This document shows, piece after piece, positions 3,075-61,504 of a stretch of 64,000 nt of DNA. The first letter of the stretch is position 1; every line of letters begins with the position of its first letter. The notes below the pieces were generated by a model. The model ran no database searches, was not told where the DNA came from, and saw only the letters and a program-made list of their open reading frames with translations. Made by a program: the position numbers and the translations under genes. Source of the stretch: Ginglymostoma cirratum (taxonomy: Eukaryota); contig JAHRHZ010000002.1 of assembly GCA_024137785.1 (NCBI GenBank), positions 10,767,263-10,831,262 on the forward strand, given 5' to 3'.

Positions 3075-3084
3075 NNNNNNNNNN
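3075..3084. other. Assembly gap (10 N)
   Basis: Run of n in the sequence. Confidence 1.
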
Positions 3085-34440: not shown

Positions 34441-37400
34441 CTGCATTGGAAATGGGACTTGACATAAAGAGATTTTAAAAAAAAAACTCTGGAGGCTTTT
34501 CTGTTTCTAAATAAAAGCAAGATACCGTGGATGATGTGAGTCTGTGACACAGTCTGCTGGAGAGACTCAGCAGATATCTGTGGACCCTGAGAAAGGAACT
34601 GAATTCGAGTCTGGAATGTTCCTCGTGTGCAATTTCCACTTTAAATTCATCATGTGGAGGTGTCGGTACCGGACTGCGGTGGACAAAGTCAGAAGTCACA
34701 CGACACCAGATTATAGTCTAATGGTTTTAATTTGAAATCACAAGCTTTCATAGCGCTGCTCCTTCAGATTTCCCGGTCCGGCGTTCAGTTTCATGAGGTA
34801 GACTCAACCGCTTGCTGCCTGTGCAGAAGTTATTACACACTAACGGTAGTGGGCTGAAATTTCATTCATTAAGTGGGTGAGAAATGTGAATGTATGTAGT
34901 GCCAAGTTTTCGGACCCAGAGTGAAGATTCAGCATTTTGTTTGAAAATCCAGAGAAAATAGCGGACGGATGTAAGTTTCACGTTGCAATATCACCGACGA
35001 TAATTGTTATTTTGCTTTAAGGAAAAAAATATTGCAGGTTTTTTTTACTTCCTTCGTATCCATACGTTTTATTTCAAGTCAGGTTTTGATTTCTTGACAA
35101 AATGAACTTCTTTGTTGACCTTTACCGCTCGTTCCCAAGTGTGATTGACTGTTGGTGGGTTAGAGATGGATTTTGCCTTGTTAATTCCTCAGAATGTTAC
35201 GCTGGACTCGAAAATTTAATTCCCCTCTCCTCTCCGCAGATGCTGCCAGAACTAGTGAGTTTCTCCAGTGCTTTCCGATTTTGTTTTTGTTCTTGTTTCA
35301 ATTACAGCTTTCCAACATCCACAGCATTTTGCTTTCATCTCCAAATTTGGAGATTTTGCCGAGCGAGGGGAGAATTTAGCATCCGGAGACCATTGTCAGG
35401 CGAGCAGCCGTTTATATTTGGCAGTGTTACGGTGGAGTTGTGTCCCTGTCATTCCCAATCTCAACCAACCACATTCAGCACTGCGACCCAGACTACCCAG
35501 CCGAAAGGAACAGCACCAGATGTGCAGGAATATAGGAGCAGACCATTCTGCCCCGACAGCATATTCCGCCATTCAATGAGATCTAACTGCATTTGACCCA
35601 TATCCCTCAGCTCATTATGTTTTAATCGTTCATGTCTTGGCCAGCCTCAACCACGCTGCTGTGGGCCTGAAGTCAGGATAGGCCTAAGGGACATGAGTGA
35701 ACAGATGGATTATCCCGACAATCGGCAATGAATTCGCGGTCATCATTAGACTCTTGATTCCAGATTTTTATTGAATTCAAATTCCACCATCTGCAGTGGT
35801 GGGATTCGAAACCCAGTTCCCAGAGCTTTATTTGGGTTAGCAGTCCAGTGATAATACCACGAGGTAATCACGTCCCCAAAACCTACCTCATATCTAAAAT
35901 TAGCAACTGATCAACATCCAGTTTGTTGAAGGCAGTTCCAAACATCTATCACCCTTTGTGTGTCGGAATGCTTCCTAACATCTCTACTGAAGTCTGACCT
36001 TAATTCATAGACACATAGAAGAACCCTCTCCCAACTGATGCTCATGTGCTCTGTAGTTACATTATTCCACACTATCATTTACATTCCAGTGCATTTTGTC
36101 TCTCAATGTGCATCCATAATGTCTAGATCCTGCCTGAATATTTTCAATCTGAACCAACTTGCATGCACATCTGGAGCAGCTGACATTTGAACCAAGTCTT
36201 CCCGCTCCAAAATAAGGATGGTACCATTGTGCCACAAGAGCACCATGACTGTGCCACCTATCAAACCTGAGTGAGGAGCCTCCAATTAACCTGGTAACTC
36301 GGTCCAACTGTTATAAAGTCATAGAGTTATGCAACACTAAACAGACCCTTCGGTCCAACCAGTCTACGCCAGCCATAATCCCAAACTAATCTCGTCCCAC
36401 CTGCCTGTGTTTGGCCCATGCCCCTTCAATTTCGAATTCACGTACCTGTCTAAATGCATTTTAAATATTGTAACTGTCGCCGCACCCACCACCTCCTCTG
36501 GATGTTCTTTCCACACACAAACCACTCTCTGTGTAAAAATAAATTTGCCCCTCATATCTTTTTTTAAATCTTTCTCCTCTCTCTTTGGACTCAGTCATTT
36601 GCTCCTTGCCCCATCCCCAAACCCTATCTTCTGCATAAAAGCTACCAGTTAGCATCAGTTCTGAAGGGGATTACACCTGATTTCTCTCCACAGATGCTTC
36701 CAGACCTGCTGAGTTTTTCCAGCAATTTCTGTTTGCGTTAGAAAACAATAAACTGGCTTTAACCTTTTTCTTATTGCATTTCAGGCTTGTTTCAATCGGA
36801 AGGACTAAAGTTCACTGAGAGATTTTGCTGTTTGCATTTGTTCCATTGCATTGATTTGTGGTCAAATATCTTCCACATTGGGAATGGGAAAGCTCCTGGA
36901 TTGATGCTTCAAGAAAATAATTCTTAAAAATTAAAAGTCATGGATTGGTGACTTCATGAGTGTTCAGATACAAAGTTGAGTTTATTTGCTTTCGACTCAG
37001 GATGTCCCAGGCCCCAAAGGCTTTTGTTGATCTTAAGTTTGAATGCATTCTCACGGGACTGTGTGTACACCTGGGGACAATTTAACAATGGCAGAATGGA
37101 TGCAGTGAAATGCAGTGGGTAGCTGCCGTGTAGCACTCATAGAGGGAGCTCAGGACCCCGATCAACATCCATAATGACCTTAACCATCTAAAGTGGGATG
37201 GTCATGGCTGAGTGGTGTTGTCACCAGACTGTTAATCCAGAGATCCCAGCTAATTGCTGGGGATTTGGGTTCGAATCTTGCCTGGGCATATTCAATTCTT
37301 GTCTTGAAAGGAAATCTTCACTTAAAAATCTAATGATGACCAGGGAAAAGCCCACACAATGTACATTAGGGAAAGAAACTGCCATCCTAAAGTAGTCTGG

Positions 37401-37560: not shown

Positions 37561-37603
37561 ATGAACCCAAGCACCATCCTCTGGATATTGGCTGTCTTCT
37601 CGG
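37561..37603 (+). CDS. Gene 2 signal-peptide exon (MNPSTILWILAVFS, phase 1)
   Basis: Acceptor TTGCAG 4 nt upstream of the ATG (implies an upstream non-coding exon), hydrophobic core, donor G|GTAAGT. Confidence 0.85.
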
Positions 37604-40600
37604 GTAAGTATCAGTACGTTATGTATAAACTTTACGCTTTGGTGTATGGTGACTGTGCAGCTAAAGGCAATAATGCGTGGTGCAATAGACAAGCAAATTA
37701 GACTGAGAGCAAAGACACTGCTGAACAGTATCGCTTATGCTATATCCGCCACAACTTCACGATGACCTAGTTCTACTCATCAACTGTTGCTTAATTATCA
37801 ACCTGTTTGTCTAGCATTTATAAACTATAGTGCTTGGGAACAGACATTTTAATCTAACTTGTCCACACTGACCAGACATCCCAGTCTGACCGAATCCCAT
37901 TTGCCAGCATTTGGCGCATATCCTTTAGCCCCACATGCCTTTTAAGTGTTGTAATTGTACCCGCCTCCACTACTTCCTCTGGCAGCTTATTCCATACATG
38001 CACTTCCTTCTGCAAGGAAAAAAGTTATCTCGTAAGTACTTTTTAAAACATTCCCCTCTCATCTTAAAACAATGTCATCTAGTTTTGGAATCCCCCACTC
38101 TAGGAAAACAGAAATTTCTTCTAGTTAAATATTTGTGAAGACCAAAACCATTCCCTCCAGTTCCCCACAACTAACTCTGTCTGTCTCCATGGCGAGTGTC
38201 TTGAGGATGAAGCAGAACACAAAATCTTGGTGCATATATGACTTTGAGTTGAACTTCTTCATTGAGGTCATGTCTTCAGATCATTTACCACTCATTTCCA
38301 TCTTCATAAGACTGCCTGATTCCACCAAATCTCAATTCATCTGATGCTGCAACCATCAGAGATGCTATTGTTATCTCTATACTTGACTATACTGTAAGCA
38401 CTTCCTCCATTACACCCTCTGTAAACCTGATCTCATCTGAAACTCTGATCGTCCTGCCATAACTCTCACAATGTGTTCCCTTCAGGCCCTGCTGGCAGAG
38501 TGACAGGAATACAATGTCACTGTGCTATATTAATGCTGTGTGAACACATTTACAAGTCCTACCAGGCAAGTGGTGGAATTAAAATTCATCGTTGTCGAGG
38601 TCTGGAGTACAAGGCTAGTCTCAATGATGGTGATTCTAACAATTATTATTGATGGCTCATTAATGTCCTTTATGGAAGGAAATCTGCTACCTGTACCTCG
38701 TCTGGGTTACATGACACATAACAATAGCATTGACACTGAAAGAGTCTACCAAACCATACAGCTCAATGGCAGTTACAAATGGGCAACCAATATTGACTTT
38801 ACTAGTGATACTCACATCCCCTGTAAAGTGTACAGTTCAGAAACAGGGAATTTGACAGAACCACCATTATTTCAATTGTTTTACTGCAAATGAGCCTCTT
38901 CTTATTTCTTTTCCTATCCTCCTACCATTTTATTCCATTCTCCCTCATGTTTCACTGGCTTTCCCTTAAATACATCCATGTTATTCGCCTCAACTATTTC
39001 GAACAATTGAAAGTTTCCCAATTACCATTGGGCGAAAATTTATTTCTTGAATTCATTTTTGAACTTGTTCCTGGCTATTTTGATAACATGGCCCCGAGTC
39101 AATTATGTTTACTCATTTTTCACTGTCTCTCTATTGTGTAGATCAGAAGAAGGTCAGGAACATGCACGTTAATTTCTGTGCAGTCTGATCACCCATTCAT
39201 TTGAAATAAAATTAAACAAACTCCATTTTAGTTAATAACTGAATGGGCAGTCTGTTTTAAAGATTAATTAAATGTAACAGCGAGATTGTTGAAAATCTCC
39301 AGAATGCCCATTTCTGTAGAATAAAAGCCTTGTATTTAGCACCTTGAGATTTATGTTCAGGATGTTTCCACGATCCAGGGTGAACAGAGGAAAGAAAGTG
39401 GTTGTTGCTTTTAATACCCTGCATGAATTGTCATCAGTGCTCTTCGTGACATTTCCTATTCAATCTCAGTCTTTTCCTGAAATTGAGGACTTGTAAGACA
39501 TTTCACGTCTTTCAAACTGGCCTTCTTATCATTTACCATTTTCCCACATCCTATCATTGCGGAGTCGAGAGCTTTTCTGTATTTACAACGCTTGACCTCT
39601 CATAGCTTTCTCAGTCATAGAGTCGCAGAGTGATCATAGAGTCATCCTTCCTTTCTCTGTCCTTCCTCATAGTTCTTGACACTTAACCTCCTTCGGTCTA
39701 TTGCCGACAGAGGGGGATTTCAAGAGTAGGCAACACATGAGGGGAGAGAGATTTAAAATGAACATGAGGGGCAATTGTATCAGAGAGCGGTTTGTGTGTG
39801 GAATGAACTTGCAGGGGAAGAGGTGGACGGTCTACAGTTACAACGTTGAAAAGGCATTTAGATAAGGACATGAATGAGAAATGTTTGGAAGGCGATGGAC
39901 CAAGCACAGTCTGGTGGGACTAATTTAGCTTGGAATAATGGACTGGTTGGACCGAAGGGTCTGATTCTGTGCTGTATGACTCTCTGACGCTGTTATGTCA
40001 AAATAGCGCATTGGGTCTCCTCTAAATACGTGATCTCTGCGATAGATCAGCACTGCAGCTCTTTCGATAACAAGCCACATATATGGTGCTTTCATATCCA
40101 GCTTGTTGGAAACCAAGTGGAAAGATTTGCTGTTTTTGTTGATCTGCCCACAGAATAATGCAGCACAGTGAAACCCATTCCGCCCACCATGCCAAGACAA
40201 GGTTTCTAAAAAAACTCTTTTGTAATTGGACCGTAATCCTTTGCAAATGAAGGGTAGCAGTCAGCTTCCTTGTTCAGACTGCAATGGAATCTGCTCCCAC
40301 TGCCCTTTCAGACAGAGGACAGCATCTCACTGAGTGGTAAAACGGTTATCTAAACGTTGCTGCACATTCCCCCGCTATTGAGCTGGTAATTTGTTTATTC
40401 GTTTTAACGTTGCCTCTCAAAGTTCCAACTTCCAATCACTTCCTCCCCTCTAATTCAGGAATCGGCGCAAGGAAGTTCCAAGTCGTTCAGAAACTTCCGG
40501 CGATTCTGGCGGAGGAGGGTCAATCAGTCCTTATCCCGTGCGAGTGGACAGGCAATGTCGACCAGACAATAGGCTCTTTTAAATGGTTGAAGGATGGTGT

Positions 40601-43600
40601 GGAAGTTTCCAATCAGACAGCGCGGTATGCAGGGCGAGTGCACAGACCCCAAGAGGATTTCATCCAAAGCCGCAATGCCTCCCTCTTTCTGAAGGAGCTG
40701 AAAGTGACTGATTCCGGGATGTATAGGTGCAGCGTGAAGTTCATGCAGCTGGGTGAGGAATATGGGAATGGAACACAGCTCATGGTGAGAGGTAAGTGTT
40801 TCACTTGTCTACAAATAGTCATGCGTGGCCGGAGAAATCAGTTCCACAGCACGACTGGTAACTTTTCCCAGTTCTTTCCGCCGATGGTGTTCTCTTCAGT
40901 TCGAGGACGCTCCCGGTAACACAATTGTCGAAAAGTACAATCTTGCACAAGGAAGAGATGCCTTTGGTTTGTTTGTTTGGACCGAGTCAAACTCCAATGT
41001 TTGTTTTCTTCATGTACAGAACCAGACTGCTTTACTGACTTTTTATGTATATTTTTAATGATAAAGAATATTTATAAAGTTTGTAAATATTCATAAAGTC
41101 AATAACGTGTCAACTACACATGGAAATTTGCTACTATCGTGCCTTCAGTATTGAATTCTGTGTGGAGTTTGCACATTGTCCCCGTGTCTGTGTGGGTTTC
41201 CTCCCACAGACCAAAGATGTGCCGTTGAGGGTGGAAATTATACAGCACGGAAACAGACCTTTCAGTCTAACTTGTCCACACTGACCAGTCATCCCAGTCT
41301 GACCGAGTCCCATTTGCCAGCATTTGGCCCATATCCTTTAACCCCACATGCCTTTTAAATGTTATAATTGTACCAGCCTCCACTACTTTCTCTGGCACCT
41401 CATTCCATACATGCACTATATTCTGCAAGAAAAATGCTACCTCTTAAGTCCTTTTTAAATCTTTCCCCTCTCATCTTAAAACAATGTCATCTAGTTTTGG
41501 GATTCCCCACTCTCGGAAAACAGAAATTTCCTCTTCTTAAATATTTGTGAAGACCAAAAACGATCCCTCCAGTTCCCCACAACTAACTCTATCTGTCTCC
41601 ACGGCAAGTGTCTTGAGGATGAAGCAGAGCACAAAATCTTGGTGTATATATGACCTTGAGTTGAACTTCTTCATTGAGAGTCATGTCTTCAGATCATTTG
41701 CCACTCATTTCCATCTTCATAAAACTGCCTGATTCCACCAAATCTCAATTCATCTGATGCTGGAGCCATCAGAGATGCTATTGTTATCTCTCTACTTGAC
41801 TGTACTATCAGCACTTCCTACTTTACACCCTCTCTCAACCTGATCTCATCTGAACTTTTCATCGTCCTGCCATAACTCTCACAATGAGCTCCCTCCCAGC
41901 ACTGTTGGCAGAGTGCATGGTAATGCAATGTCACTGTGCTATATTAATACTGTATCAACACATTTACAAGTCCTACCAGGCAAGTGGTGGAATTAAGATT
42001 CATCATTGTCGAGGTCTGGAGTACAAGGCTAGTCTCAACGATGATGATTCTAACAATTATTATTGATGACTCATTAATGTCCTTGATGGAAGGAAATCTG
42101 CTATCTGTACCTGGTCTGGGCTACATGGACCATTACAATAGCATTGACTCTAAAGTGGACTCCCAAACCAGACAGCTCAATGGCAGTTACGAACGGGCAA
42201 CCAATATTGACTTTACTGGTGATACTCTCATCCCCTGGAAAGTGTCCAGTTCAGAAACAGGGAATTTGACTGAACCACCATTATTTCAAGTGTTTTACTG
42301 CAAATGAGCCTCTTCTCATTTCTTTTCCTATCCTCCTACCATTTTATTCCATTCTCCCTCATGTCTCACTGGCTCTCCCTTAAATACATCCACGTTATTC
42401 ACCTCAACTATTTCAGACAATTAAAAGTTTCCCAATTATCATTGGGCGAATTTTTTTTCTTGAATTCCTTGTTGAACTTATTCCTGGCTATTTTGAATTC
42501 ATGGCCCCTATTCAGTTATGTTTGCTCATTCTTGAGTGTCTCTATATTGTGAGATCAGGAGAAGGTCAGGAACATGCACGTTAATTTCTGTGCAGTCTAA
42601 TCACCAAAACATTTTAAATAAAATTAAACAAACTCCGCTTTAGTTAGTAACTGAATGGGCAGTCTGTTTTAAAGATTAATTAAACGTTATTGCAAGGTCG
42701 TTGAAAATCTCCAAAATTCCCATTCCTGTATAATAAAAACCTTGTGTTTAGCACCTTGATATTTATGTTCAGGATGTTTCCACGATCCAGGGTGAACAAA
42801 TGGAAGAAAGGTGGTTGTTTGTTTTTAAGACATTGCATGAGTTGTCATCAGGGCTCACAGTGAGATTTCCTATTCAATTTCAGTCTTTTCATGGAATTAA
42901 GGAGTTGAAGGACATTTCACTCCTTTCAAACTGGCCTTCTTATCATTTAACATTTTCCCACATCCTATCATTGCGGAGTCGAGTGCTTTGCTGTATTTAG
43001 AATGCTTGACCTCTCATATCTTTCTCAGTCATAGAGTCGCAGAGTGATCATATAGTCATTCTTCCTTTCTCTGTCATTCCTCATAGTTCTTGACACTTAA
43101 CCTCCATCGGTCTTTTGCGGTGGGTTTCAAGAGTAGGCAGCATATGAGGGGAGAGAGATTTAAAATGGACTTGTGAGGCCACTTTTTCAGAGAGTGGTTT
43201 GTGTGTGGAACGAACTTGTCGGCGAAGTGATGGGTGTGGCTACAGTTACAACGTTGAAAAGGAATTTAGATAAGTATATGAATAAAAAATGTTTGGAAGG
43301 ATATGGACCAAGCACAGGCAGGTGGGATTAGGTTAGTTTAGAATAATGGACTGGTTGGACCGAAGGGCCTGTTTCTGTGTTGTTTGACTCGATGACTCAG
43401 TAATATCAAAATAGCACATTGGGTCTCCTCGAAATAGATGATTTCTGTGATAAATCACCACTGCAGCTCTTTTGAACAACAAGTCACATCTACGGTGCTT
43501 TCATATCCAGCTTGTTGGAAACCAAGTGGAAGGATTTGATGTTTTTGGTGATCTGCCCATAGAATGATGCAGCACAGTGAAACCCATTCCGCCCACCATG

Positions 43601-46600
43601 CCAGGACAAGGCTTCCAAAAAAGCTCTTTTGTAATTGGACCATAATCCTTTTCCAATGAAGGGTGCAGTCAGCTTCCTTGTTCAGAATGTAATGGAATCT
43701 GCTCCCACTGCCCTTTCAGACAGAGGACAGCATCTCACTGAGTGGTAAAACAGTTATCTAAACGTTGCTGTAAATTTGCCCCCCTATTGAGCTGGTAATT
43801 TGTTTATTCGTTTTAACGTTGCCTCTCAAAGTTCCAACTTCCAGTCACTTCCTCCCCTCTAATTTTCAGGAATCGGCGCAAGGAAGTTCCAAGTCGTTCA
43901 GAAACTTCCGAGGATTCTGGCGGAGGAGGGTCAATCAGTCCTCATCCCGTGCGAGTGGACAGGCCATGTCTACCAGAGAATACGCTCTTTTAAGTGGTTG
44001 AAGGATGGTGTGGAAGTTTCCAATCAGACAGCGAGGTATGCAGGGCGATTGCACAAACCCCATGAGGATTTCATCCGCAGCCGCAATGCCTCCCTCATGC
44101 TGAAGGAGCTGAAAGTGACTGATTCCGGGATGTATAGGTGCAGTGTGAAATTCATGCAGCTGGGTGAGGAATATGGGAATGGAACGCAGCTCACAGTGAG
44201 AGGTAAGTGATTCACTTGTCTGCAAATACCAATGCGTAGCAGGAGAAATCAGTTCCACAGCACGACTGGTAACTTTTCCCAGGCTTTTGCGCCAATGCGG
44301 TTCTATTCAGTTCGAGGACCTTCTTAGTAACACAACTGTCGAAAAGTACAATCTTGCACAAGGAAGAGATGCCTTTGGTTTGTTTGTTTGGACCGAGTCA
44401 AACTCCAATGTTTGTTTTCTTCATGTACAGAACCAGACTGCTTTAGTGACATTTTACGGACATTTTTAATGAATAAAGTATATTTGTAAAGTTTGTGAAT
44501 ATTTATAAAGTCAAAAACGTGTAAACTGTACATGGAAATTTGCTACTATCGTGCCTTCAGTATTAAACTCTGTGTGAAGTTTGCACATTGTCCCCGTGTC
44601 TGTGTGGGTTTCCTCCCACAGACCAAAGATGTGCAGGTGAGGGTGGAAATTATACAGCACGGAAACAGACCTTTCAGTCTAACTTGTCCACACTGACCAG
44701 ACATCCCAGTCTGACCGAGTCCCATTTGCCAGCATTTGGCCCATATCCTTTAACCCCACATGCCTTTTAAATGTTGTAGTTGTATCCGCCTCCACTACTT
44801 TCTCTGGCAGCTTATTCCATACCTGCACTACATTCTGCAAGAAAAAATGTTGTCTCTTAAGTCCTTTTTAAATCTTTCCCCTCTCATTGTAAAACCATTC
44901 CATCTAGTTTTGGAATCCCCCACTCTAGGAAAACAGAAATTTCCTCTTGTTAAACATTTGTGAAGACCAAAACCATTCCCTCCAGTTCCCCACAGCTAAC
45001 TCTATCTGTCTCCATGGCAAATGTCTTGAGGATGAAGCAGAGCACAAAATCTTGGTGTATATATGACTTTGAGTTGAACTTCTTCATTGAGAGTCATGTC
45101 TTCAGATCATTTACCACTCATTTCCATCTTCATAAAACTGCCTGATTCCACCAAATCTCAATTCATCTGATGCTGGAACCATCAGAGATGCTATTGTTAT
45201 CTCTCTACTTGACTAGACTGTAAGCACTTCCTACATTACACCGTCTGTAAACCTGATCTCATCTGAAACTCTAATCGTCCTGCCATAACTCTCCCAATGT
45301 GCTCCCTCCCAGCACCGCTGGCAGAGTGTACAGTAATGTAATGTAACTGTGCAAGACTAATGTTGTATCAACACTTTTACAAGTCCTACCAGGCAAGTGG
45401 TGGAATTAAGATTCATCATTGTCGAGGTCTGGAGTACATGGCTCGCCTCAATGATGGTGACTTTAACAATTATTATTGACGGTTCATTAATGTCCTTTAT
45501 GGAAGGAAATCTGTTATCTGCACCTGGTCTGGGCGACATGACACATAACAATAGCATTGACTATTAAATAGACTACCAAACCAGACAGCTCAATGGCAGT
45601 TACGAAAAAGGCAGCCAATATTGACCTTACTAGTGATACTCACATCCCCTGTAAAGTGTACAGTTATGAAACAAGGAATTTGACTGAACCACTATTATTT
45701 CAAGTGTTTTACTGCAAATGAGCCTCTTCTCATTTCTTTTCCTCTCCTCCTACCATTTTATTCCATTCTCCCTCATGTCTCACTGTCTATCCCTGAAATA
45801 CGTCCGTGTTACTCACCTCAACTGTTTCGGACAATTGAAAGTTTCCCAATAATAATTTTGTGAAATTTTTTTTCTTGTATTCCTTGTTGAACTTATTCCT
45901 GGCTATTTTGAATTCATGGCCCCTGGTCAATTATGTTTGCTCATTCTTGAGAGTCTCTAAATTGTGTAGATCAGAAGAAGGTCAGGAACATGCACATTAA
46001 TTTCTGTGCCGTCTAATCACCCATTCATTTGAAATAAAATTCAACAAACTCCACTTTAGTTAATAACTGAATTGGCAGTCTGTTTTAAAGATTACTTAAA
46101 TGTTACAGCTAGATTGTTGAAAATCTTCAGAAGCAACATTTCTGTGGAATAAAAGCCTTGTATTTAGCACCTTGATATTTATGATCTGAATGTTTCTCCG
46201 ATCTGGGGTGAACAAAGGGAAGAAAGTGCTTGCTGTCTTTTATACCCTGCATGAGTTCTCATCTGGGCTCGCAGTGATATTTCCTATTCAATCTCAGTCT
46301 TCTCCTGGAATTGAGGAGTTGTAGGACATTTCAAACTGGCCTTCTTATCATTTACCAATTTCCCACATCCTATCATTGCGGAGTCGAGTGCTTTTCTGTA
46401 TTTACAACGCTTGACCTCTCATAGCTTTCTCAGTCATAGAGTCGCAGAGTGATCATAGAGTCATCCTTCCTTTCTCTGTCCTTCCTCATAGTTCTTGACA
46501 CTTAACCTCCTTCGGTCTTTTGCCAACAGTGGTGGATTTCAAGAGTAGACAGCATATGAGGGGAGAGAGGTTGAAAATGAACATGAGGGGCAATTATTTA

Positions 46601-49600
46601 GAGAGTGGTTTGTGTGTGGAATGAACTTGTAGGGGAAGTGCTGTATGTGGCTACAGTTACAACGTTGAAAAGGAATTTAGATAAGGACATGAATGAGAAA
46701 TGTTTGGAAGGAATTGGGCCAAGCGCGGGCAGGTGGGACTAGTTTAGTTTGGAATAATGGACTGGTTGGACCGAAGGTTCTGTTTCTGTGCTGTATGATT
46801 CGATGACTCAGTAATATCAAAATAGCACATTGGGTCTCGTCTAAATACGTGATCTCTGCAATAGATCAGCACTGCAGCTCTTTCAAATAACAAGCCTCAT
46901 CTATGGTGCTTTCAAATCCAGCTTGTTGGAAACCAAGTGGAAGGATTTGATGTTTTTGGTGACCTGCCCATAGAATGATGCAGCACAGTGAAGCCCATTC
47001 TGCCCACCATGCCAGTACAAGGTGTCTGAAAAAGCTCTTTTGTAATTGCACCGTTATCCTTTCCCAATGAAGGGTAGCAGTTAGCTTCCTTGTTCAGACT
47101 GTAATGGAATCTGCTCTCACTGCCCTTTCAGACAGAGGACATCATCTCACTGAGTGGTAAAACGGTTATCTAAACGTTGCTGCACATTTCCCCCCTATTG
47201 AGCTGGTAATTTGTTTATTCGTTTTAACGTTGCCTCTCAAAGTTCCAACTTCCAATGACTTCATTCCCCCTAATTTTCAGGAATCGGTGCAAGGAAGTTC
47301 CAAGTCGTTCAGAACCTTCCGAGGATTCTGGCGGAGGAGGGTCAATCAGTCCTCATCCCGTGCGAGTGGACAGGCCATGTCTACCAGAGAATACGCTCTT
47401 TTAAGTGGTTGAAGGATGGTGTGGAAGTTTCCAATCAGACAGCGCGGTATGCAGGGCGATTGCACAGACCCCATGAGGATTTCATCCGCAGCCGCAATGC
47501 CTCCCTCTTTCTGAAGGAGCTGAAAGTGACTGATTCCGGGATGTATAGGTGCAGCGTGATATTCATGCAGCTGGGTGAGGAATATGGGAATGGAACCCAG
47601 CTCACTGTGATAGGTAAGTGATTCACATGTCTGCAAATAGCCATGCGTAGCAGGAGAAATCAGTTCCACAGCACGACTGGTAACTTTTCCCAGGCCTTTG
47701 CGCCAATGCGGTTCTATTCAGTTCGAGGATGTTCTTAGTAACACAATTGTAGAAAAGTACAATCTTGCACAAGTAAGAGATGCCTTTGGTTTGTTTGTTT
47801 GGACCGAGTCAAACTCCAATGTTTGTTTTCTTCATGGACAGAACCAGACTGCTTCAGTGACTTTTTATGTACATTTTAAATGAATTAAGTACATTTGTAA
47901 AGTTTGTGAATATATATAAAGTCAATAACGTGGAAACTATACATGGAAAGTTGCTACTATCTTGCCTTCAGTATTAAATTCTGTGTGATGTTTGCACACT
48001 GTCCCCACGTCTGCTTGGGTTTCCTCCCACAGCCCAAAGATATGCAGGTTTGGGTGGATTGTCCATGCTAAATCGCCCATAGTGTTCAAGGATGTGCAGG
48101 TTAAGTGGGTTAACCATGAGAATTGCAGAGTTACAGGTCGAGGGCAGGGGAATGAGTCTGGGTGGGATGCCCTTCTGATGGGCCGAATGGCCTACTTCCA
48201 CACTGTCGGGATTCAATTTCTAAATTAGCTATGGGGACATTATCAGCCTTTTGCCCAATTTTTTTGTCATACTTCCATGAGCATCCTGATTACCCACTGT
48301 CTCAGATTATAACAATCAAGTAGGAATCGATAGTTAACGCAGGAGCCTGATTGTCATTTTGAAAATTAACTGGGAGGAATATATTGAAAATTGTAGAATA
48401 ACAACTAATTTAATGTGCAAATGGAAGCAATGTAGTCATTGAGTCATACAGCACAGAAGCAGACCCTTCAGTCCAACCAGTCCATGCTGACCACAATCCC
48501 AAACCAAACTAGTCCCACCTGCCTGCGCATGGGCCATGTCCCTCCAAACATTTCTTATTCATGTGCTTATCCAAATGTCTTTTAAACGTTGTAACTGTTT
48601 CCACATCCACTGCCTCTGGAAGTTCATTCCACACACGAACCACTCTCTGTGTAAAAAAAAAAAATTCGCCTCGTCTCTTTTTAAAATCTCTCTGCTCTCA
48701 CCTGCAATATATGACCCCTGGTCTTGAAATTCCCTATCCTACAGAAAGGACACTTACCATTTACTCTGTCTCTACCCTTCATGATTTTTAAAACTTCTCT
48801 CAGGTCACTTTTCGAACTCCGACACTCTGGTGAAAAAAGTTCAAGCCCAGCTATCCTTTCTTTATAACTGAAACTTTTCATACCTGGCAGCATTGTTGTA
48901 ATTCTCTTTTGAACCATCTCCAGCTTAATAATATCCTTCCTGTAACAGGGAGACCAGAACTGGACACAGTATTCCAGAAAAGGAGCCTGATTTTCATTTT
49001 GAAAAATAACTGGGAAGAGCATTCTGATAATTCTGAAGTTGCAGGAATAATAATTATTTAAATATGCGAATGGAAGCAATTGTCATATTATGGAGTACAG
49101 AAGTGGAGAAAATATTCCTCCGTTGCTTGAAATTACACTTGCACCAAATTTGGAGTAATGCATGCGGCTTCAGATCCAGAAGGATATATTAGCCTTGCGA
49201 GATTACAAGCCTGACTTGCTAGTGTGGTACTGCAGCTTGGTGTTTCAGCTGACGCACGGTTTTGGATTTTATAGATAGGAAATAATTATTTCTTATAGCG
49301 GGAGCATCAAGAATGATGGAACATGATCTGAAAATTAGAGACCGCTAATTAAACAGTGAAGGCAGGAAGCAGATTCGAATACAAAAGAGGGTGAGAATCT
49401 GGAACCCTCTTTGGAAAGCCTGAAAATACTGAAACTTGAAAAGGCAATGTTGATGGATAAAAGGCAAGACAGTGTTAATAAAGGGTATGTAAATTGTTGC
49501 ATTAGTTTGTGTTCAGGTTCAGATCAACCATGATCTAACTAAATGATTGAATAGATGCAAGGGGCCTAATGGCGTATTTCTTTTACCTGTGTTGTGCTCT

Positions 49601-52600
49601 GATTTGTTCTTTTTGTTTCTTAGAGAAACCAAAAGGTAGCATGACGCTATGGTTATTCCTGTTGATCGGTGCTCTGCTACAACTCGCTCTCCTGTTCATT
49701 GCTGGGCTCTACTATATGAAGTTACTCAGAATGAAAGGCAAGGATGTGTATTTTTACGCTGTTTGGCAGATGTAAAGGTTGTGAGATATTGTGTTGCAAA
49801 CATTTACATTTGTATTCTTAAGGTTGATGTATCTGATTGGCACTCTTAATCGCTTTGTCTTCATCTATCTCTTGAATTTCCTTCTCCCAAGCTCGAACCG
49901 TTTGCCACACTGTCTGTACCTCATTGTGTATCACCTGTGGGTCAAAATTCTCACGCACCTTCTCTCCCCCTTCCAAAGTGCACACTACTAAAGACCTTAA
50001 CCAATTAGAGTGATCGCATCCAGTTCGCCTGGTATGTTCCATTTCTCAAAAAACCTGAGTAAAATCAAATCATAACTGACCTGTATATGCAATAAGAGGA
50101 CGACACCTATTTAAATCATCTGTTGGATCCCCTCTGTTACAACCTATCACAGCTAATATACTTTCCTTCATACCTTTCAAATCTCCAATAGACACAGTAA
50201 CCATCACTAATTAACTGTTCCAATATAGTAACAATCCATAAACACAGGTTTGATAAAAGGCAAATTCAGCAAATACATTGTCTCACATGCAACTCCCACA
50301 ACAGGCAGAGAATACCCAATTTTTGGCTATACCAAAAGAGAAGGAACCATTAAATTTCACTTCTTCAGGAGCCCACCTGCAAACGCTAAGACCTAAAAGT
50401 AAAAATCCTGGTTCTTTGAGAGCTTGACCTCACTCTCTTAGGCTGCTTCTATTGTTCCAACTTTTTTTAAAAAAAGCACCCAAGGCCTCACAAGCTGTTT
50501 ACTTTACTGGCTTTCCAACTAGCCAGCTCTGCACCTCTGTTTTATCCCTCTCATTAAAAAATAAGAAGACAATAACATTTTAAAGTCACTGTATTATCAC
50601 AAAATCATTTTAGCAATTTCCCCGCACTGCAGTGACAGAATTCATTTTGGAAGGCGATCGTTGTGTGGGGGCTCTGAGGTATTCAGTGACCCTAGAAAAG
50701 GAGGTAGGGGTCCCCAGTCATCGTCACGTGCAGCATCCTGCTGGGCATTCTTTTCCAGCTTTCCCCAATCCCTTCCGTAATCACTCTGCCCCACAGGCTG
50801 AACTGTCCCAAATACCCACTTAATTCTTTTCTGTATCAACAGCTGAGATTTTAATTTATCAATCCGCTGCTAGCATTTTGAACAGTCAGCCACGGAGATT
50901 CCTCTTTCTCTGCCTACTTGACACAGACGTTTAACAGTAGACTGCAAATTGGTGCATTTTCTGTTAAGTTCATTCACAGTCTGTTTGGCAATGTTATGAC
51001 CCCTGTTTGCACTGTGTACTCCTTAATAAGCCTTCTCACATTGGATCAGAATGTGGCGCGCATACAATACATTTATCTGACTCCTTTGCTCCTGTTCCAC
51101 CACTTTTCTCAGTAACCTTTTCAACTGCTCCCGTAATTTTCCTCATGGAATCTCTCGTTGTCTTCATGTAATATTTTATCCTCCAACTCTCGACACGTTA
51201 ACTGCTGCAAACAACTGACTATTGCTGTAGCCTTACTAAGTCAGCTTGGTAGCATGCTTTCTTTGCTCTCTACATGTTACTTCACAACATTTCTGACCAA
51301 CGGATCGCAGGCTCGTTACTAATTTACTGCAATGCTCAACAACTAGGGCTACGTCTTATTTAGCTCCTTCCTTAATATCTCTGACCGTGCTTGGCAATCT
51401 GCCAGTCTTTACTCTTAACTCTTAGGTATCTTCTAGGAGATACAAGAAGCGACCAGATTCACTGCACAAATTCTGCCATTTGTTTGTCACACTCAGCAAA
51501 CACCAGCTTTATTCCCAACTGCTGATCAATTCACGAAGTCTGGGGAATTCAACTTCGAGACAACCTCAAGTCTCAGCTTATCAATGGCCACTCAGTGTTG
51601 CCCGAAAGGAGTACTCATACTTTTTTACTCAGATATGTGACAGACAAATGACAGGGAACTTCATTAAACAAGCTCTTCAATATTTCAACTCCCAGTTATA
51701 GGAAGGATGTTATTGAGCTGGAGAGGGTTCAGAAGAGATTTACGAAGATGTTGCCGGGTATGGGGGGTTTGAGTTTTAAAAGAATGCTGCATAAAAGCTG
51801 AGACTTTTGTCATTAGAAGTTGAGAGGTGACCTCACAGAGGTTTATAACATCATGATGAGTATGGATAGCGTAAATGGAACCGTGTCTTTTCCCATTCTC
51901 GGGATTTGAAGACGAAGGGGCACATTTTTTAAGGTGAGAGAAGAGGGATTTCAATAAGGCACAAGGGGAAAATCTTTTCCACAGAGAGTGGTTCACACAT
52001 GGAATGAACTTCCTGAAGAAGTGGTGGATGGAGGCACAGTTACAACATTTAAGAGTCACTGAGATAAGTATATGAAAAGGACAGGTTTCCGGGGGACATA
52101 AGCCACGAGCAGGCAGATAGGACTAGTTTACCTTGGCAGTATGGTCAGTGAGGCATAGTTGCACCGAAAGGTTTGTTTTCGTGCTGTTTGGCGCTCTGAC
52201 CATGACTCAGTAGAAGGCATACATTAGTTGCAACATTTAATTCTTACTTCACTTAACTTATCTTCAAATTTAACTCACTTCATTTAAATTCACTTGATCT
52301 TACTTTGCTTAATTCATATTTAACCCCAATTCAGACTTTAACTCAACAAGTTTGGCTTGAATCAAATACGATTTGAGTGAAGTGGCCAACATTGCTCTTC
52401 TTGCAGATACTCCCTTGTGATTCTTTATTTTCTCTGAAGATCACTTCAGGGCCGGACTTCTCAAATTTGGTCTTGAAGGTTTCTCCTGCAAAAAATTCCT
52501 TTGTTCTGCTAAATTATCTCAAAAAGTGTGCACCTCCTCCAGAGACTTCTCTGACGCTAAACCAATGAATTGACCAAAGCCAGATCACGTTGTTCAATCT

Positions 52601-55600
52601 CAGCTCATGGAGTTTATTGGTAAATAGCTCCCAAATGATTACAGCAAATAAACTGCCACATTCCATGCTCCATGTAAGGCAGTAAGTGGTGCCAGCATGT
52701 CGAGAAACCATCATGACACTTTCCTTATTTGGTCAACACAGCAAACTGCAGATCACAACATATCCTGGCACCAACTTTATCTGAGGCCAGAGTTTAAACT
52801 AGCTTGACACCAATTCCCAGCATGTTTCATTGTAGCTCTTAACCAGTCTTGTAAGTATTTCTGCTGCTGGCCACCTGACCACAAGGCCATGCTGATTCTC
52901 CCAAGGCAATCACGTCAAAAGTTAAAATATTAATACTTCTAAATGCATTGCAACACAGAATGTGTGCACTCAGTCCAACTGGACCATTCTGGCAGCGGTC
53001 TCAGCCCCCTCTCACGATTTCAACATACTCCACACTGTTTTATTTCTTAGGTACTTCGCAGTTTGCCTCAACTGCTCCAACACACAGCAACATTTTGGCC
53101 GTGCTGTTGTTGAATCAGTTTCTCCTTGTTGCATCTAAAACATCACAAACAGAAATGTTTCATCGAATTCTGCCATCAATTGCTCTCAGAACTTCTTTCA
53201 GGCTGCCCCTTGGTCTATTCTTTCCGCTGATACATTTTGAGAGAAAAAAATGAATTAAAGTCAATCATATGCATTTGCTTTGTTCTTTATTTTGTCTGTC
53301 ATTTGTAGTGAATAACTTTGTGCAATTAATATCTTTAAGTGCAGACTCTACAGTTCCATGCACAAAACTGGCATCAATGAATAATGAGACTTAAGTAATA
53401 AGAAATGTCTTCTGTAATCCAATACTTTTCTTGTGTCCCTTTGTTTTAGGTCGTCGCCGGGCTCAAAGGTGAGTGAACATCAGCAGGTACACATTTGCTG
53501 GTTAAGAAATGCACTCTGTTACCATTTGAAGTGATTGAAAGATTTGTAGACAGTTTAGCAGTAAATTTCATTTCACGCAGATTGTCTGCAACCCATTTTC
53601 TGCAAGGATACAGGAGCTTGGAATACTCATCAGAGTTGAGACAGAGCTCCACGTAAATGCACCTGAGATGCCCCCATTCTACAAAGTTAAAGGTCAAATT
53701 TTGCGAAGTTATCGTCAACCAGGAAAATCTCCTTGTCTCAACAGATATGATGGGTTGAACAGCCTTCTCTCTACTTTAAATACATTCATATTTCTGCTGT
53801 CAAATGTTTTCAGCAAATGTGGTTGAGTTCTTCCTTTTCATTATTTTGCAGACAAGTCCAAGGTAATTCAGAAATCAACTGCGTAGATGGTACGTAAAGC
53901 TGGTTTTGGTTATGTTTGAAAATAATATAAACTTCTATGGGGTTATTAAAACCCTCAGGATTACCATGATACTGAGTTTAAAATGGATGAAAAATTTCCA
54001 GTTTGACACCCGAGTTATGATTCAGAAAAAAAAATCCCCAGACATTACAGTTTTCTTTACTCATATAATAGCTTCTTATAAATGTTTCTATTTCCACAAA
54101 GTACTTACCTCTCAGTCAATGGCATCTGATTTAATCAAAGGCAGCACTTTATTTTCACTCTTCCATTGAACAGAAATCACATCTTCAGGGATAATTACAA
54201 TTTTCTGCCTCTTAACAGCTTTTTTTAAGTCATGGTGGGCACTTACGCAAGTTAGAGGAAAGTAAAGTTCTGTGGGAGAAACAAGTATGCAATTCCAGGA
54301 ATGTGGATATGAATATTAGTGAAAAAATATACACTTTATCACACTTGTCTTGTACCCATTAGGACAATTCAGTAATGTAAATACTAAAGTAAAGGGAAAA
54401 CGTATTGCATATCATAGTATTGTATGAGAGAAAATGCTAATTGGTTGGCAAATTGCCTCTGACTACAGAGGTGTTGAGATGTAAGATGAACTAGTTCTGA
54501 ATGACTGACATTTAACTGCCAAAATTTCATTAAATATTCAACTAGACAGCTTGACACTGATTGGACAGGGCATGCCCAACTGATAATCCTAAATTGGTTG
54601 TCAGTGTAATTCTTCATGAATCAGTATTATATAGCAAATATTTTCCAATCACAGAATCATCGTAGTGTTGGATGCTGCATTGTGAGGTTTGCAAGTGCAG
54701 ACTAGTTCCATACCTTTCTTCTTTCACTGAGTTGGAGGGATATTCAGTGTCGTAACATTCTAGAGGGCTACAGAGATAGGGCTGGAGAGTAGGACTAGCT
54801 GTGTAGCTTTTTTGGGGGCAGTACAGGCATGATAACTTGAATGGCTTCGTTTTATGGTAAGATTCTGTGATTCTATTATTCTAAGTTCTGACATTCATTG
54901 GGACAAATGGCTGACTTTCCTAGCATCAGGCCAACAATGAAATTCACATGCCACATTAATTAGCTGGGTGATAGGCAGAATGCCTTTTCAGCTTGGCAGG
55001 AAAAATGAAACAGATGTGCTTGCTATGACTGAAATTTATGATGTGGTATGTGCATTTCAATACCTGGGTGATGCTCGACAAGTAAGCCGTATGTTCGTTA
55101 GACAAAGACCAAGTATCATATAAAATGACATGTTCTTTCAGTTGCTTGCCACAAGCAGGTGCTGACTACATGCAACGAGCCCATGCAGGCAAAACGCAGA
55201 CCAAACATTAGATGTGATCCTGTGATTAAACAACATTTTCAAATAATGTTTGGGGGTAGGTAAAACATAAACTTTCAATAAAATATGATTCTCTTCAGCT
55301 ATAACTACATGAAGTTTGAACAAACCATTATTTGACAATGGATATATGCATGAATAAAATTTAAGGACTTTAGTGTCAGACTGGGTAAAGTGTGGGGAGG
55401 TGGGAGTAACAGACTTGTGAAAGGGACAAGACAGACTCGATGGGCTGACACACATTCCACTGAGCTGTAGCAGCCTATTCTATGGTTCTATTCTAATTGT
55501 GACATGAATATGTGAATACCTGAGATACTCAACTGTTGGATAAATTGGGGTTGAATTTGGATGTGAATGGGGCTACAGGACGTGCTGGAAATTTTATTTT

Positions 55601-58600
55601 ACTGACTGTTATACCAGCTGATGAATGTACACTCATATCAAAGATAAGATAGAACATTAACCAGGAAATTGGGTGAAAAGATAGTTTTACCTCTCAGACG
55701 ATATCACTGTCTGTTGATTTTACGAAGGGATAAGATTGTTTAGGGTATAGAGCCAATGTTCCGAATATTCTTTCTGGTTTTCACAATTGGCAGTTTAGAG
55801 TAAAAATGCAGCTGTTTCAATGAAATTTCTCAAAATGCATAATTTGAGTCACAGTGTCGTACAGCACAGAAACAGACCCTTCGGTCCAAACAGTCCAAGC
55901 TGACCATAATCCCAAACTAAACTAGTCACTAGGCCCATATCGCTCCAAACATTTCCTATTCATGTACTTATTTAAGTGTCTTTTAAATTTTGTGACTGTA
56001 CCCACATCCATCGCTTCCTCTGGAAGTTCATTCCCCACATGAACCACTCTCTGTGTAAAACATAAATGCCCTTCATATCTTTTTTAAATATCTCCCCTCT
56101 CACCCAAAAATGTGTCCTCTTGTCTTTAAATCCCACACCCTGTGGAAAGCACACCTGCCAGTCAACTTATCTACCTCATGATTTTATGAACCTCTATAAG
56201 CTCACTCCTCAACCTCCAGTGAAAAAAAGTCCCAGAACATCCAGCCTCTCCTGAGAACTCAAACCTTCCATTCCTGGCAACTTCCTGGTAAATCTCTTCT
56301 GAATCTTCTCGAGCTTAATAATATCCTTCCTGTCATCAGCCGACCAGAACTGAACACAGTACTCCGGAAGAGTTCTCACCAGCACCCTGCAAAACCCCAA
56401 ACGGATATTGGTTCTTTTAAAAGACAGTCAATTGAATAAGCAAACACTATAAACTGAAGGCATTTCATACAATTTATGAGCTGCAATGAGTCTTATGCTT
56501 TTATTTGAACATAAGGAAGCAACTGTATCAATGTTGCAAAACTATTACTGGCCCTAGGGACAAAACTGATGAGTTAAGTAACAATCAATTTACACATTAC
56601 AGTGCCCTACAGACAGTAACTGGAAGTGTTACTATCAACATTGGTTCATGTTGGAATTACTTATGGGAATATTGTTGAACAGTACACTGCAAGGGTACCC
56701 TACTCTTCTTTGAAAGATGCCAGGAAATTTTACTGACTGTGAAATCGTTCCTGTTTAATTGAATGAAGAATGTGTGACAATGCGGAACTCCCTCAGTTCC
56801 AGACAAAAATAAAAAGCCATTTTTCTGTTCTCCGATGGTGGATTGTCGCTTGAATCCAGATCTTTCACTATTTAGTGTTGCGAACTCAGCACAACTGGAA
56901 GTATTAAACAGTTTTATGGACATACTTATGAGGTCGTATCTTATATATATTCATATAGATGGTGGCTCAGTGTTTAACACTGCTGCCTCACTGCGCCAGG
57001 GACCTGGTTCCGTTCCACCCTTGGGCGACTGTCTGTGTGGAGCTTGTGCGTTCTCCTCGTATCTGCATGGGTTTCCGCCAGGTGCTCCGGTTTCTTCACT
57101 CAGCCCAAAGATGTGCAGGCGAGGTGGATTGGCCATACTAAATTGCCTGTCGTGTTCAGGGCAGTGTGGATTAGGTGGGTTGAGGGGTACAGGTCTGGGT
57201 GGGATTCTCTGAGGGTTGGTGTGGAGTTGTTGGTCCAAAGGGCCTATTTCCACACTGTAGGGATTCTATGACGATAAGAAACTCTTTCCATAAAAGTTCC
57301 TATAAAGCAACATTTCGAACAATTCCAGCAGATACCTTCCGTTTTCGAGTCAAAGGGTCATAGAGCATGGAAACAAACCCTTCGGTCCAACCATTCCATG
57401 CCGAACATAATCCCAAACGAAACAAGACTAACCTGCCTGCTCCCAGCCCATATCACCCCAAAACCTTTCCTATTCACGTATGCTTTATATTTGCATTCTC
57501 ATGCTTTTGTCTTTTAGATATTGAAACATTACCTGTCCTGGATGAAGTGCAGAATCTGGTAAGTAGCCTTTAAGGAAGACAATCACAACACTTGAAATCT
57601 GCATTTGCAGATGAGGATTGAAACAAAATATACCCAAGTCCCCATATAAAAAATCAAATTCAAGGTTGCAGAAATGCCGAGACTGTTCCTGAAAACGATT
57701 GCCATTAAAGACCAGAAATAGATTTTGTTAAAAATAACTGGGAGGCTGACACTGCTCACTATAATGCTCAATGTCTGCTGCCTCAATTCAAAGTGTAGTT
57801 AATAATTTTCTGTCAGACATCCCACGCTTCTCCATTGGCTCTGATATTGTGTTTTCATCACTGGGAGCAATGCACCGCCTTGAACTTGGGATAATTGATG
57901 ACTAGGTTTCCAGTATAATGATGACAGATAATAATGAAAGCTAGCGCATTGAGAAGTAAATGACCGGAGCATCAAAAAACACCGACAGACAACTGTATTG
58001 CTTCTTAAGAAGTTCACAAGAATTAAGTCTCATTTCTGAAACAGGTAATGAGTTTTGAAATATCAATGTATGTGTACTGAGAGAGTGTGTAAACGTTTTA
58101 ATCAGAACTGTATTTCACAATCTTCTTTCACTTTCTGTTCTTGATTTAAATCCAGTTAATACACTTTGCTTTATCTATTACGGTTTGCATTCTGGGATTA
58201 CAAGTGGCAGCATAAATTGCTGGTAACCAACAGATAATATTCAGTTTCACTGTTGTCAACAGGATTAAACATTAAGGGCAGTGTTTAATCAGAAGTCAAT
58301 TCCATACCATCTGCTTTACTGTCATTTGTTAGAATATCTTTTATACCTATGCGAGTCAGCATGGATAGTTCAATTGGATAGTTCCTGGTCTTGCTGGATA
58401 TGTTAGACTACCTATAGATAGCACTCAGCTTAAAAGTAATTTAAAACTTCTCTGCAGACTAAAATCTGTAAAACAAAGTTGTATACAACCGTAGCTGAGA
58501 CAATGAATGATCGCCATTGATCAACTGTGAAACTCAGACATTACATTCTACATCGATAAAGTTGACACCAAATAACCTTAAGGAATATGGTCATCTTTCA

Positions 58601-59712: not shown

Positions 59713-61504
59713 ATCCTAACTCTTCCATTGCAACAGTAAGAGTTACAGTTACAGACCGCAGCTGTTTGTCTTCCAGGATCGCCTGTGGAATGCGTAGTAG
59801 TCAGCTGAGACATGTTATAAAGCTATCTTAGTGTGGTTATGGGTGGCATTGAAGTCAACGATGTCGAAATGTGTGGGCTTCCCTGAGATGCCCCCGACAA
59901 CTGATCTTTAGGTCTACTAGAGAAGAGCAGGATTCCCTGTTATATTTCAGGGGTTGTCTATTGGATGCGCTGGAAAGTGATTAAAAAAACACAACCTTGC
60001 CTCATTCTGTTACAACAAAGTAAGCCTTGGCGATTATCAGAAGACACTTGGTTGTGCTTTCCGAATTCAAATGTGGTCAACGATATTAAAACATCAAGTA
60101 ACCATAAGGAACATGATCATCTTTCACTTTTCATGTTTTCACAGAGAAACCGTAATATTTCAATTTTGCACGAGTGGAAAGTCATAACATATGCCCATTG
60201 GTGAAAAATAGGAAATGTATGGTTTAATCCTGCTGTAAGGATTCCCAGAACTCTCCAGCAAAAAACAGTATTTTCAGCCTGCCCCAACCATGTGCAAAAG
60301 CAGTTGGTGGAAACGACAGTGGAACAGAGTCTGCTCAGACACTTATTTCAAAGAAGTGGTCCCAAGTGTTACTAAGTGGAGCGTGAAATCATCACTCCAC
60401 ATCAATTTGGTCTCTTTAGGACACTTGGGCGTACATTTTAAGCTCGCAAACCAGGAGGAAGAAGATCAGCAGTTCTTTCTGCATTCCATCAACTTTTCTT
60501 CCCTGTCAATTCAATGCTGTTCTGGAATCAGTCCTCCGATGATTCCCAGCAAGTTGACTTTCACGCCAACTATTTTACTCCATACAATTTGTTTCATTTT
60601 CTGCCTTATCCCTCTCTGTATTTGACTGCTTCTTGTTGGGTTTCAAATGAAGTTCCGTTCATGTAGAAGTGTTATTGACAGAGAAGGAGCTAATTTTACC
60701 CGAAGGCAAGATGAGCAGAATAGCTGGTGGAATCCCAGTTTTACATTGTAAGCTGCATCACCTCCCATTAGCGAGTTAAATCAGGTGCACTGTGAAACGA
60801 ATGGAGCAAGTGACCGACCATTTGGGATGTTGAGGGGATGGGCGTAGGTAGAGATTTAAGGAGAAGAAAATTTTACTCAGCTGCTCCATAGGAGTGTCAC
60901 AACATGACTCAGCTCGTTGATCAAAAGTATCTATAAAAGAAAAGTTGAAACAAGTGTGAGTGATTGCATTCTCTGTAAGAACAAAATAACATTACCGTTT
61001 TTTTTGGTTTCTGACAGCCTCAAGGCCTTCAGCAACTCAACAGCGACTGAGATGGGCAAGTAACTCAATTCATTTAAATGTTTGGAAGAGCTGGTGAGAA
61101 ATGAGAAGTGCATCTTTGTGGACTAACATAAACCACTTATACCTTGCTTCTATCTTTCTTACCACATTTTGGGAGATCTTCTGGAAATAGATACCCTTCA
61201 TGGCTTTTCAAGTGATAGTGATTGGGTAAGGTTTTGCTCTGGTGTCATGACAGTGCATTCATCTGGCACCTTTCAAGCTCAGAAGCGATTACAGCCAATG
61301 AGGGACTTTTGAAGTGTAGTCATTGATGCAGTGTAAAAAACACAGATTTGTATAATGCAGTGTCCCATAGGAAGCAATTGATAATGATAAAGTCTAATGT
61401 CACTTATTCAGGAAAGCACGTCAGTCAAATCACCAGAGTGAACTCACCTGCTGTTCTTCAAAATTATGTCATGGGATTTTTTGAATTTGATTTATTATTG
61501 TCAA

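Follow-up and report, generated by a model that had tools for sequence, protein, structure and literature searches.

A nurse-shark gene of the NCR3/NKp30 family with three V exons flanked by a single leader and a single transmembrane exon

Among natural-killer receptors, NKp30 (NCR3) is, to our knowledge, the only one that can be traced through the jawed vertebrates. Models of antigen-receptor origin invoke its germline-joined VJ domain, linkage to the major histocompatibility complex (MHC) and binding of B7H6 are traits of the family, and human NCR3 is alternatively spliced in its tail exon, as also appears from titles cited in PMC12272517. The mammalian receptor (structures 3NOI and 3PV6) carries one non-rearranging variable (V) domain of VJ type, encoded by a single exon and including a J-like GxGTxLxV motif; the exon order is leader, V, and stalk/transmembrane (TM), and an arginine in the TM segment couples the receptor to CD3zeta/FcRgamma. 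Work by Kinlein and colleagues reportedly describes nurse-shark NCR3 genes of several divergent subtypes, MHC-linked and expressed in lymphoid cells. An NKp30 with several V domains (multi-V) was not found described in the full-text literature searched, a scope outside which the text of Kinlein et al. 2021 (Immunogenetics 73:333) lay, and a prior description is possible. A passage of PMC12227049 cites GenBank entries MT914154-MT914161 for the nurse-shark NCR3 family. The present article is focused on a 64,000-nucleotide (nt) stretch of the nurse shark Ginglymostoma cirratum (assembly GCA_024137785.1, contig JAHRHZ010000002.1, positions 10,767,263 to 10,831,262 of the forward strand; hereafter, the window), in which an earlier reading made from the letters alone (hereafter, the sequence-only reading) had noted an NKp30-like receptor gene with three V exons. 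We consider it likely that the locus is one shark NCR3/NKp30-family gene with a triplicated V block, which encodes a multi-V type I receptor subject to cassette skipping, and that this design is a family trait of elasmobranchs.

The gene shares with mammalian NKp30 the non-rearranging, one-exon VJ-type domain, its J-like end, and the order of leader, V, and stalk/TM. By contrast, three V exons lie between one leader and one TM exon, and two of them are joined in a spliced contig; the membrane span, LWLFLLIGALLQLALLFIAGLYY, contains no charged residue; the predicted tail is long, composed of micro-exons, and provided with tyrosine motifs; and splicing varies the ectodomain. Teleost novel immune-type receptors and receptors of the pIgR, CD300, and SIRP types are similar in having tandem V-type domains per chain, rapid lineage-specific expansion, and tails with immunoreceptor tyrosine-based inhibitory motifs (ITIMs), whereas they belong to other V families and the V domains of the window are clearly closest to NCR3.

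Self-BLAST of the window reveals a 3.41-kb unit present exactly three times in tandem at 37822-48058, and each unit consists of ~2.64 kb of intron, a 333-nt exon, and ~0.44 kb of intron. The leader and TM exons are both outside the repeat, 218 nt before and 1.56 kb after it, respectively. The features are given below, with unit borders from self-BLAST and unit alignment; transcript joints are from four public runs (X1, X2, X4, and X5), which were placed on 43850-49849 only, i.e., on the V2, V3, and TM exons.

37561-37603, forward strand: leader exon, with the ATG at 37561, encoding MNPSTILWILAVFS and the first base of a Gly codon; donor GTAAGT
37822-41234, forward strand: repeat unit 1, 3413 nt (intron, V1 exon, intron)
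41235-44646, forward strand: repeat unit 2, 3412 nt
44647-48058, forward strand: repeat unit 3, 3412 nt
40459-40791, forward strand: V1 exon, 333 nt, phase 1-1, VJ-type V-set immunoglobulin (Ig) domain
43870-44202, forward strand: V2 exon, 333 nt, phase 1-1; spliced to V3 (run X1) and to the TM exon (run X4)
47281-47613, forward strand: V3 exon, 333 nt, phase 1-1; spliced to the TM exon (runs X2 and X4) and preceded by V2 in run X1
49624-49737, forward strand: stalk and TM exon, EKPKGSMTLWLFLLIGALLQLALLFIAGLYYMKLLRMK-G, with an uncharged span and a GC donor; 71-72% identical to the TM exons of Rhincodon and Stegostoma

All three V exons have a polypyrimidine tract and CAG upstream, GTAAGT downstream, and an open frame. 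Each encodes 111 residues starting with G-IGARKF and ending with ..YGNGTQL(M/T)V(R/I), and the Ig landmarks are uninterrupted in V1-V3: the Cys in LIPCEW, the Trp in FKWLK, DSGMYRC, and the J-like YGNGTQL(M/T)V. Self-comparison and inspection of the splice sites thus confirm the architecture of the sequence-only reading, i.e., three intact 333-nt VJ exons of phase 1-1, one leader, and one TM exon; the phase is symmetrical, and therefore every subset of V exons, including each of the seven non-empty combinations that had been pointed out, splices in frame. Compared with its counterparts in the Chiloscyllium, Stegostoma, and Rhincodon homologues, the leader shows 87-93% identity. In agreement with the earlier statement that the units hold no extra leader or TM exon, tblastn identified no second leader-like or TM-like piece in the units or the window, a search of low power for a 14-residue leader. 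Weak tail-like and TM-like tblastn matches within the units (E 0.5-9) were taken for chance. The proposal that the GIGA start of each V exon represents the end of a signal peptide is not sustained, as the same motif heads internal V domains of multi-V homologues.

The three units are about equally far apart, with an intron identity of 90.2-90.6% (divergence 9.4-9.8%), and the V exons are 93.7-96.7% identical (divergence 3.3-6.3%), exons being less diverged than introns in the three unit pairs (Fisher p 0.038, 0.023, and 6e-5). In pairs of V exons, the ratio of nonsynonymous to synonymous divergence (dN/dS) is 0.34-0.75, and dS is 0.07-0.10, equal to the intron divergence. The V copies differ at 6-14 of 110 residues (90-95% identical), and the replacements are concentrated in the BC loop, which resembles complementarity-determining region 1, and in the C''-D region; the BC loop reads N-V-D-Q-T-I-G in V1 and H-V-Y-Q-R-I-R in V2 and V3. 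The units are old, maintained copies and not collapsed haplotypes: stacking of haplotypes is rejected because ~10% divergence is far above the allelic level and a diploid cannot give three haplotypes. The ~250 nt of intron before each V exon (40215-40458 in unit 1) are 94-95% identical between units versus ~90% in the rest of the intron; either local gene conversion or the conservation of a branch point or of sequence that controls splicing may account for this.

Membership in the shark NCR3/NKp30 family, which the sequence-only reading had proposed for confirmation by search and phylogeny, is supported by sequence comparison on several levels. Pfam assigns V-set to all three domains (E 5e-12 to 5e-11), and among solved structures the top four matches are human NKp30 chains (E ~4e-11), followed by the next match at 1e-6. 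The nearest database protein is an NCR3-like protein (“natural cytotoxicity triggering receptor 3-like”) of Stegostoma tigrinum with 84-88% identity; identity is 81-85% for Rhincodon and ~70% for Chiloscyllium. In an exhaustive HMMER search, NCR3-named proteins of turtles, frog, lungfish, and Callorhinchus, which are single-V relatives, show 40-45% identity, and the V domains of the window are placed inside the cartilaginous-fish NCR3-like group in the tree.

Evidence that more than one of these V exons is used comes from contigs of the public runs. Joints and loose ends at 44.6-44.9, 46.7-46.8, and 48.4-49.0 kb were disregarded, being located in high-copy interspersed repeats. Run X4 behaves as RNA, with a summed contig depth of 275-450 on the V exons, 80-146 on the TM exon, and 1-3 on unique intron; it also holds mismatch-free intron contigs from unit 3. 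The joint of V3 to TM (47613 to 49624, GT..AG) has a depth of 160 in X4 and 15 in X2, and the joint of V2 to TM with V3 skipped (44202 to 49624, GT..AG) has a depth of 104 in X4. The two are distinct molecules because V2 and V3 can be told apart by three positions within their final 20 nt. The joint of V2 to V3 is contained in one 363-nt contig of X1 (record 1, depth ~6), in which 44067-44200 (134 nt) is followed by 47279-47507 (229 nt). The V3 part of this contig has one mismatch to the reference, with V2 differing from V3 there at four positions and V1 at many more. The V2 part has V2-specific letters near the junction and the V1/V3 state (T, T, and C) at 44097, 44099, and 44144; of these positions, only 44144 is C in X4. 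The V1/V3 letters in the V2 of X1 suggest another allele or an exchange between tandem copies. In the raw-read polyA run X5, no junction was found, at an exon depth of at most 1. Three junction types are therefore documented, namely, V2-V3, V3-TM, and V2-TM. Transcripts are not confined to one V exon, and the copies are not misassembled haplotypes, the two outcomes against which the sequence-only reading was to be checked: V2 and V3 are both spliced, and the units are ~10% divergent.

The same design is found in other elasmobranchs. HMMER and word-based searches for proteins matching the V domain several times identified multi-V homologues among the automated models of RefSeq, and the comparison of V copy number in related sharks that had been suggested gives multi-V models in Carcharodon, Heterodontus, Mobula, Scyliorhinus, Stegostoma, and Cetorhinus, and one V in Rhincodon. 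Carcharodon carcharias LOC121291130 (XP_041068137-41) comprises a leader, three near-identical V domains with a GID(A/S)EKF start, an EKTKP stalk/TM segment, and a micro-exon tail with the motifs SIYTPME, IQYASI, and DYGYDELN. Alignment of its isoforms shows V1-V2-V3 in isoforms X1 and X2, V1-V3 in isoform X3, V1-V2 in isoform X4, and three V domains with another tail in isoform X5; what isoforms X3 and X4 lack corresponds precisely to one exon cassette. Three V domains, TM, and tail are modelled in Heterodontus francisci (XP_067865770-75), five V domains in one and two in the other of the models XP_062903898 and XP_062903900 of Mobula hypostoma, two in Scyliorhinus canicula (XP_038671255), and at least three in a partial model of Cetorhinus (XP_078422540); the Stegostoma orthologue is split in two models (XP_059495591 and XP_059495503), each of which breaks off or begins within an additional V domain. 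The common build is one leader, two to five tandem V domains (G-I/S-x-A-x-K-F), an EKxK stalk/TM segment, and a SIYTPME micro-exon tail, and the window gene fits this multi-V NCR3-like build exon by exon (alignment and tblastn with the Carcharodon, Stegostoma, and Rhincodon models). These homologues, together with the V2-V3 contig of X1, support the earlier claim of a multi-domain product. Several of the homologue models are misnamed in RefSeq as turtle-like (turtle homolog B-like), SIRP-beta-2-like, or pIgR-like. At the V1-V2 boundary of Carcharodon, GTELTVR-GTELTVR-GIDSEKF, seven residues of the J-like end are duplicated.

When the V domains are separated and placed in trees, the copies cluster by species and not by position; V1-V3 of the window group with a support of 100/92, and the copies of Carcharodon, Cetorhinus, Stegostoma, and Mobula each cluster within their species. 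Because the copies cluster by species, each lineage expanded or homogenised its V array on its own. The membrane-proximal V domain of Heterodontus groups with that of Scyliorhinus as a type distinct from the other V copies, which suggests an older two-type V arrangement behind the two.

Downstream of the TM exon, contigs leave the genome at 49737/8, that of X1 running on for 209 nt and that of X2 for 93 nt; because they depart there, the GC donor at 49737 is in use and the message continues into downstream exons. The donor sequence is AAAG|GCAAGG (49737-49739), and that of one tail micro-exon is apparently ATGG|GCAAGT (~61055-61057). If the intron after the TM exon were retained, a stop would follow after 12 more residues (..KDVYFYAVWQM*) and yield a tail-less isoform. 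The predicted tail micro-exons below were located by tblastn with orthologue tails.

57518-57558 (approximate), forward strand: predicted tail micro-exon, ..DIETLPVLDEVQNL, from the Stegostoma and Rhincodon tails; AG and GTAAGT flanks
59536-59577, forward strand: predicted tail micro-exon, DQDESGLESYALCM; AG/GT flanks
59665-59708, forward strand: predicted tail micro-exon, VENNEDTSIYTPME, with a tyrosine motif (..SIYTPME)
61018-61055 (approximate), forward strand: predicted tail micro-exon, SLKAFSNSTATEM; donor apparently GC
53852-53889: candidate tail micro-exon

The orthologues also have exons for the ITIM-like VQYATL and for DYGYDELN, neither of which was found up to the window end at 64000, and the gene probably extends past 61055.

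The favoured explanation is a tandem triplication of a 3.41-kb block, comprising intron and V exon, that lies between the leader and the stalk/TM exons. By default, the product would be a type I membrane protein that carries three NKp30-like VJ domains one after another, separated by linkers of approximately six residues (..LTVR-GIGARKF..). With an uncharged membrane span and a tail of its own bearing tyrosine motifs, the receptor would signal through this tail and not through CD3zeta/FcRgamma; our best guess from the motifs is that such signalling is probably inhibitory or mixed. Skipping of the symmetrical cassettes would give two-V and perhaps one-V isoforms, and the number and identity of V domains may tune avidity, reach, or fine specificity, together with the BC-loop variant displayed, towards a ligand that is probably B7-like. 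Repeated or concerted amplification of the V exon would keep the multi-V trait in elasmobranch NKp30-like receptors.

Several observations weigh against this explanation. Each junction is represented by a single Logan contig per run and not by raw reads, and the raw-read run X5 is near-empty over the exons. The V2-V3 joint is found only in X1, at a depth of ~6, and is not among the joints listed for X4, in which those of V2 and V3 to TM are the prevailing ones, and the main product may be a form other than the three-V one. The junction evidence is confined to the V2, V3, and TM exons. The V2-TM joint could originate from an allele without unit 3, i.e., from a copy-number polymorphism and not from skipping. 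Furthermore, the model of the Rhincodon orthologue has but one V domain, and the homologue isoforms are automated, uncharacterised predictions.

One alternative is a constitutive three-V receptor, in which the V2-TM joint would stem from a two-unit allele generated by unequal crossing-over or from rare mis-splicing. Near-consensus acceptors and identical AG|GTAAGT donors in all three exons favour inclusion, and the V2-V3 joint is present as such a receptor requires; tandem 3.4-kb units of 90% identity are prone to unequal exchange, and the three V1/V3-type letters in the V2 of X1 suggest that copies have exchanged. Against this, the depth of the V2-TM joint in X4, 104 versus 160 for V3-TM, is too high for noise, the same run also contains the unit 3 intron contigs without mismatches, and the models of the single Carcharodon locus include an isoform without V2 and an isoform without V3. 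We therefore regard constitutive inclusion as unlikely, and cassette skipping is the favoured explanation of the V2-TM joint.

A further proposal concerns how the number of V domains might be set. Inverted copies of one interspersed repeat of ~260 nt precede the V exons, and a lone forward copy lies in the V3-TM intron.

39739-39988, reverse strand: inverted repeat copy ~470 nt upstream of V1, complementary to 48434-48699; predicted duplex energy -311 versus -110 for shuffled sequence
43146-43397, reverse strand: inverted copy of the same repeat upstream of V2; predicted duplex energy -313
46558-46808, reverse strand: inverted copy of the same repeat upstream of V3, 82% complementary to the downstream arm; predicted duplex energy -341
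48434-48699, forward strand: lone copy of the same repeat in the V3-TM intron, with which each upstream arm could pair

In stability, the predicted arm duplexes far exceed controls made from shuffled or unrelated sequence. Competing RNA pairing of 48434-48699 with one of the three upstream arms might set the V number by a docking/selector logic derived from a transposon; pairing would loop out V3, V2 and V3, or V1-V3, and yield three-V, two-V, one-V, or V-less products. The V2-TM joint fits this idea, to which we assign only a slim chance. An extra forward copy of the repeat lies upstream of the leader at 36317-36581, and the repeat is a high-copy element with very high depth in every run. Rfam gave no match within 36-50 kb, repeat arms included. 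High-copy repeats are also located at 44450-44900 and 48850-49050, with a summed depth of 10^3 to 10^5 per RNA run and many chimeric joints. If true, the pairing model would give a vertebrate immune receptor with docking/selector elements co-amplified with its variable exon.

Mutually exclusive or stochastic splicing, in which each chain would receive one V domain on a common tail, was the more far-reaching suggestion of the sequence-only reading, and we judge it very improbable. The locus resembles Dscam1 and the clustered protocadherins in its tandem array of similar in-frame exons for Ig-type ligand-binding domains upstream of shared constant exons; the occurrence of V2-TM and V3-TM joints in one run, the one-V model of Rhincodon, and a downstream arm complementary to three upstream arms, in the manner of a docking site with selector sites, also agree with such a choice. 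However, exactly one exon per cluster is selected from dozens in Dscam1, whereas the window gene has three exons that can be joined to each other: the X1 contig carries V2 and V3 in one RNA, which refutes mutual exclusion. Homologues are modelled with two to five V domains per chain, the geometry of the inverted arms predicts looping out of exon blocks and not the selection of a single exon, and the copies differ at only 6-14 of 110 residues. A choice in the style of the protocadherins or UGT1, in which each variable exon has its own promoter and leader and splices to shared constant exons, is excluded, as tblastn revealed nothing leader-like in the units, none of the V exons is provided with a leader of its own, and every V exon starts at a phase 1 acceptor. 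Of the alternative use of V exons that had been suggested, cassette skipping stands (V2-TM and V3-TM in run X4; isoforms X3 and X4 of Carcharodon), and exclusive choice falls. Nor is there a system comparable to RAG, as the proposed RAG-independent diversification would imply, in copies of 90-95% identity from which no more than seven isoforms can arise.

That the triple array was produced by the assembly, through stacking of haplotypes or mis-expansion of a repeat, or that two of the copies are dead pseudo-exons, is exceedingly improbable, judged from the assembled sequence and the run contigs: tandem repeats are error-prone in assemblies, but the ~10% divergence runs throughout the units and a diploid cannot supply three haplotypes, the V2-specific and V3-specific 3′ ends are each spliced to TM, V2 is joined to V3 in cis in an independent run, all frames are open, and dN/dS is below 1.

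Elsewhere in the window, an upstream gene contains a second, very divergent NKp30-like VJ exon at 14119-14451 on the forward strand (31% identical; Pfam V-set, E 3e-12), and a broken VJ relic with an in-frame stop lies at 8157-8029 on the reverse strand. Ten N at window positions 3075-3084 represent an assembly gap or masked sequence.

The multi-V trait is real but modest, and its architecture is already present, uncharacterised, in public annotations. Because the same architecture occurs in several RefSeq annotations, often under a wrong name, the value of the finding lies in recognising and naming the trait and not in a new mechanism. In this trait, nature offers a clean case of an immune-gene exon amplified repeatedly or in concert; if the explanation given here is true, the trait also provides a simple means to tune avidity or specificity without rearrangement. 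If elasmobranch members of the family routinely carry two to five VJ domains varied by skipping, the textbook single-V picture of the NKp30 family would change.

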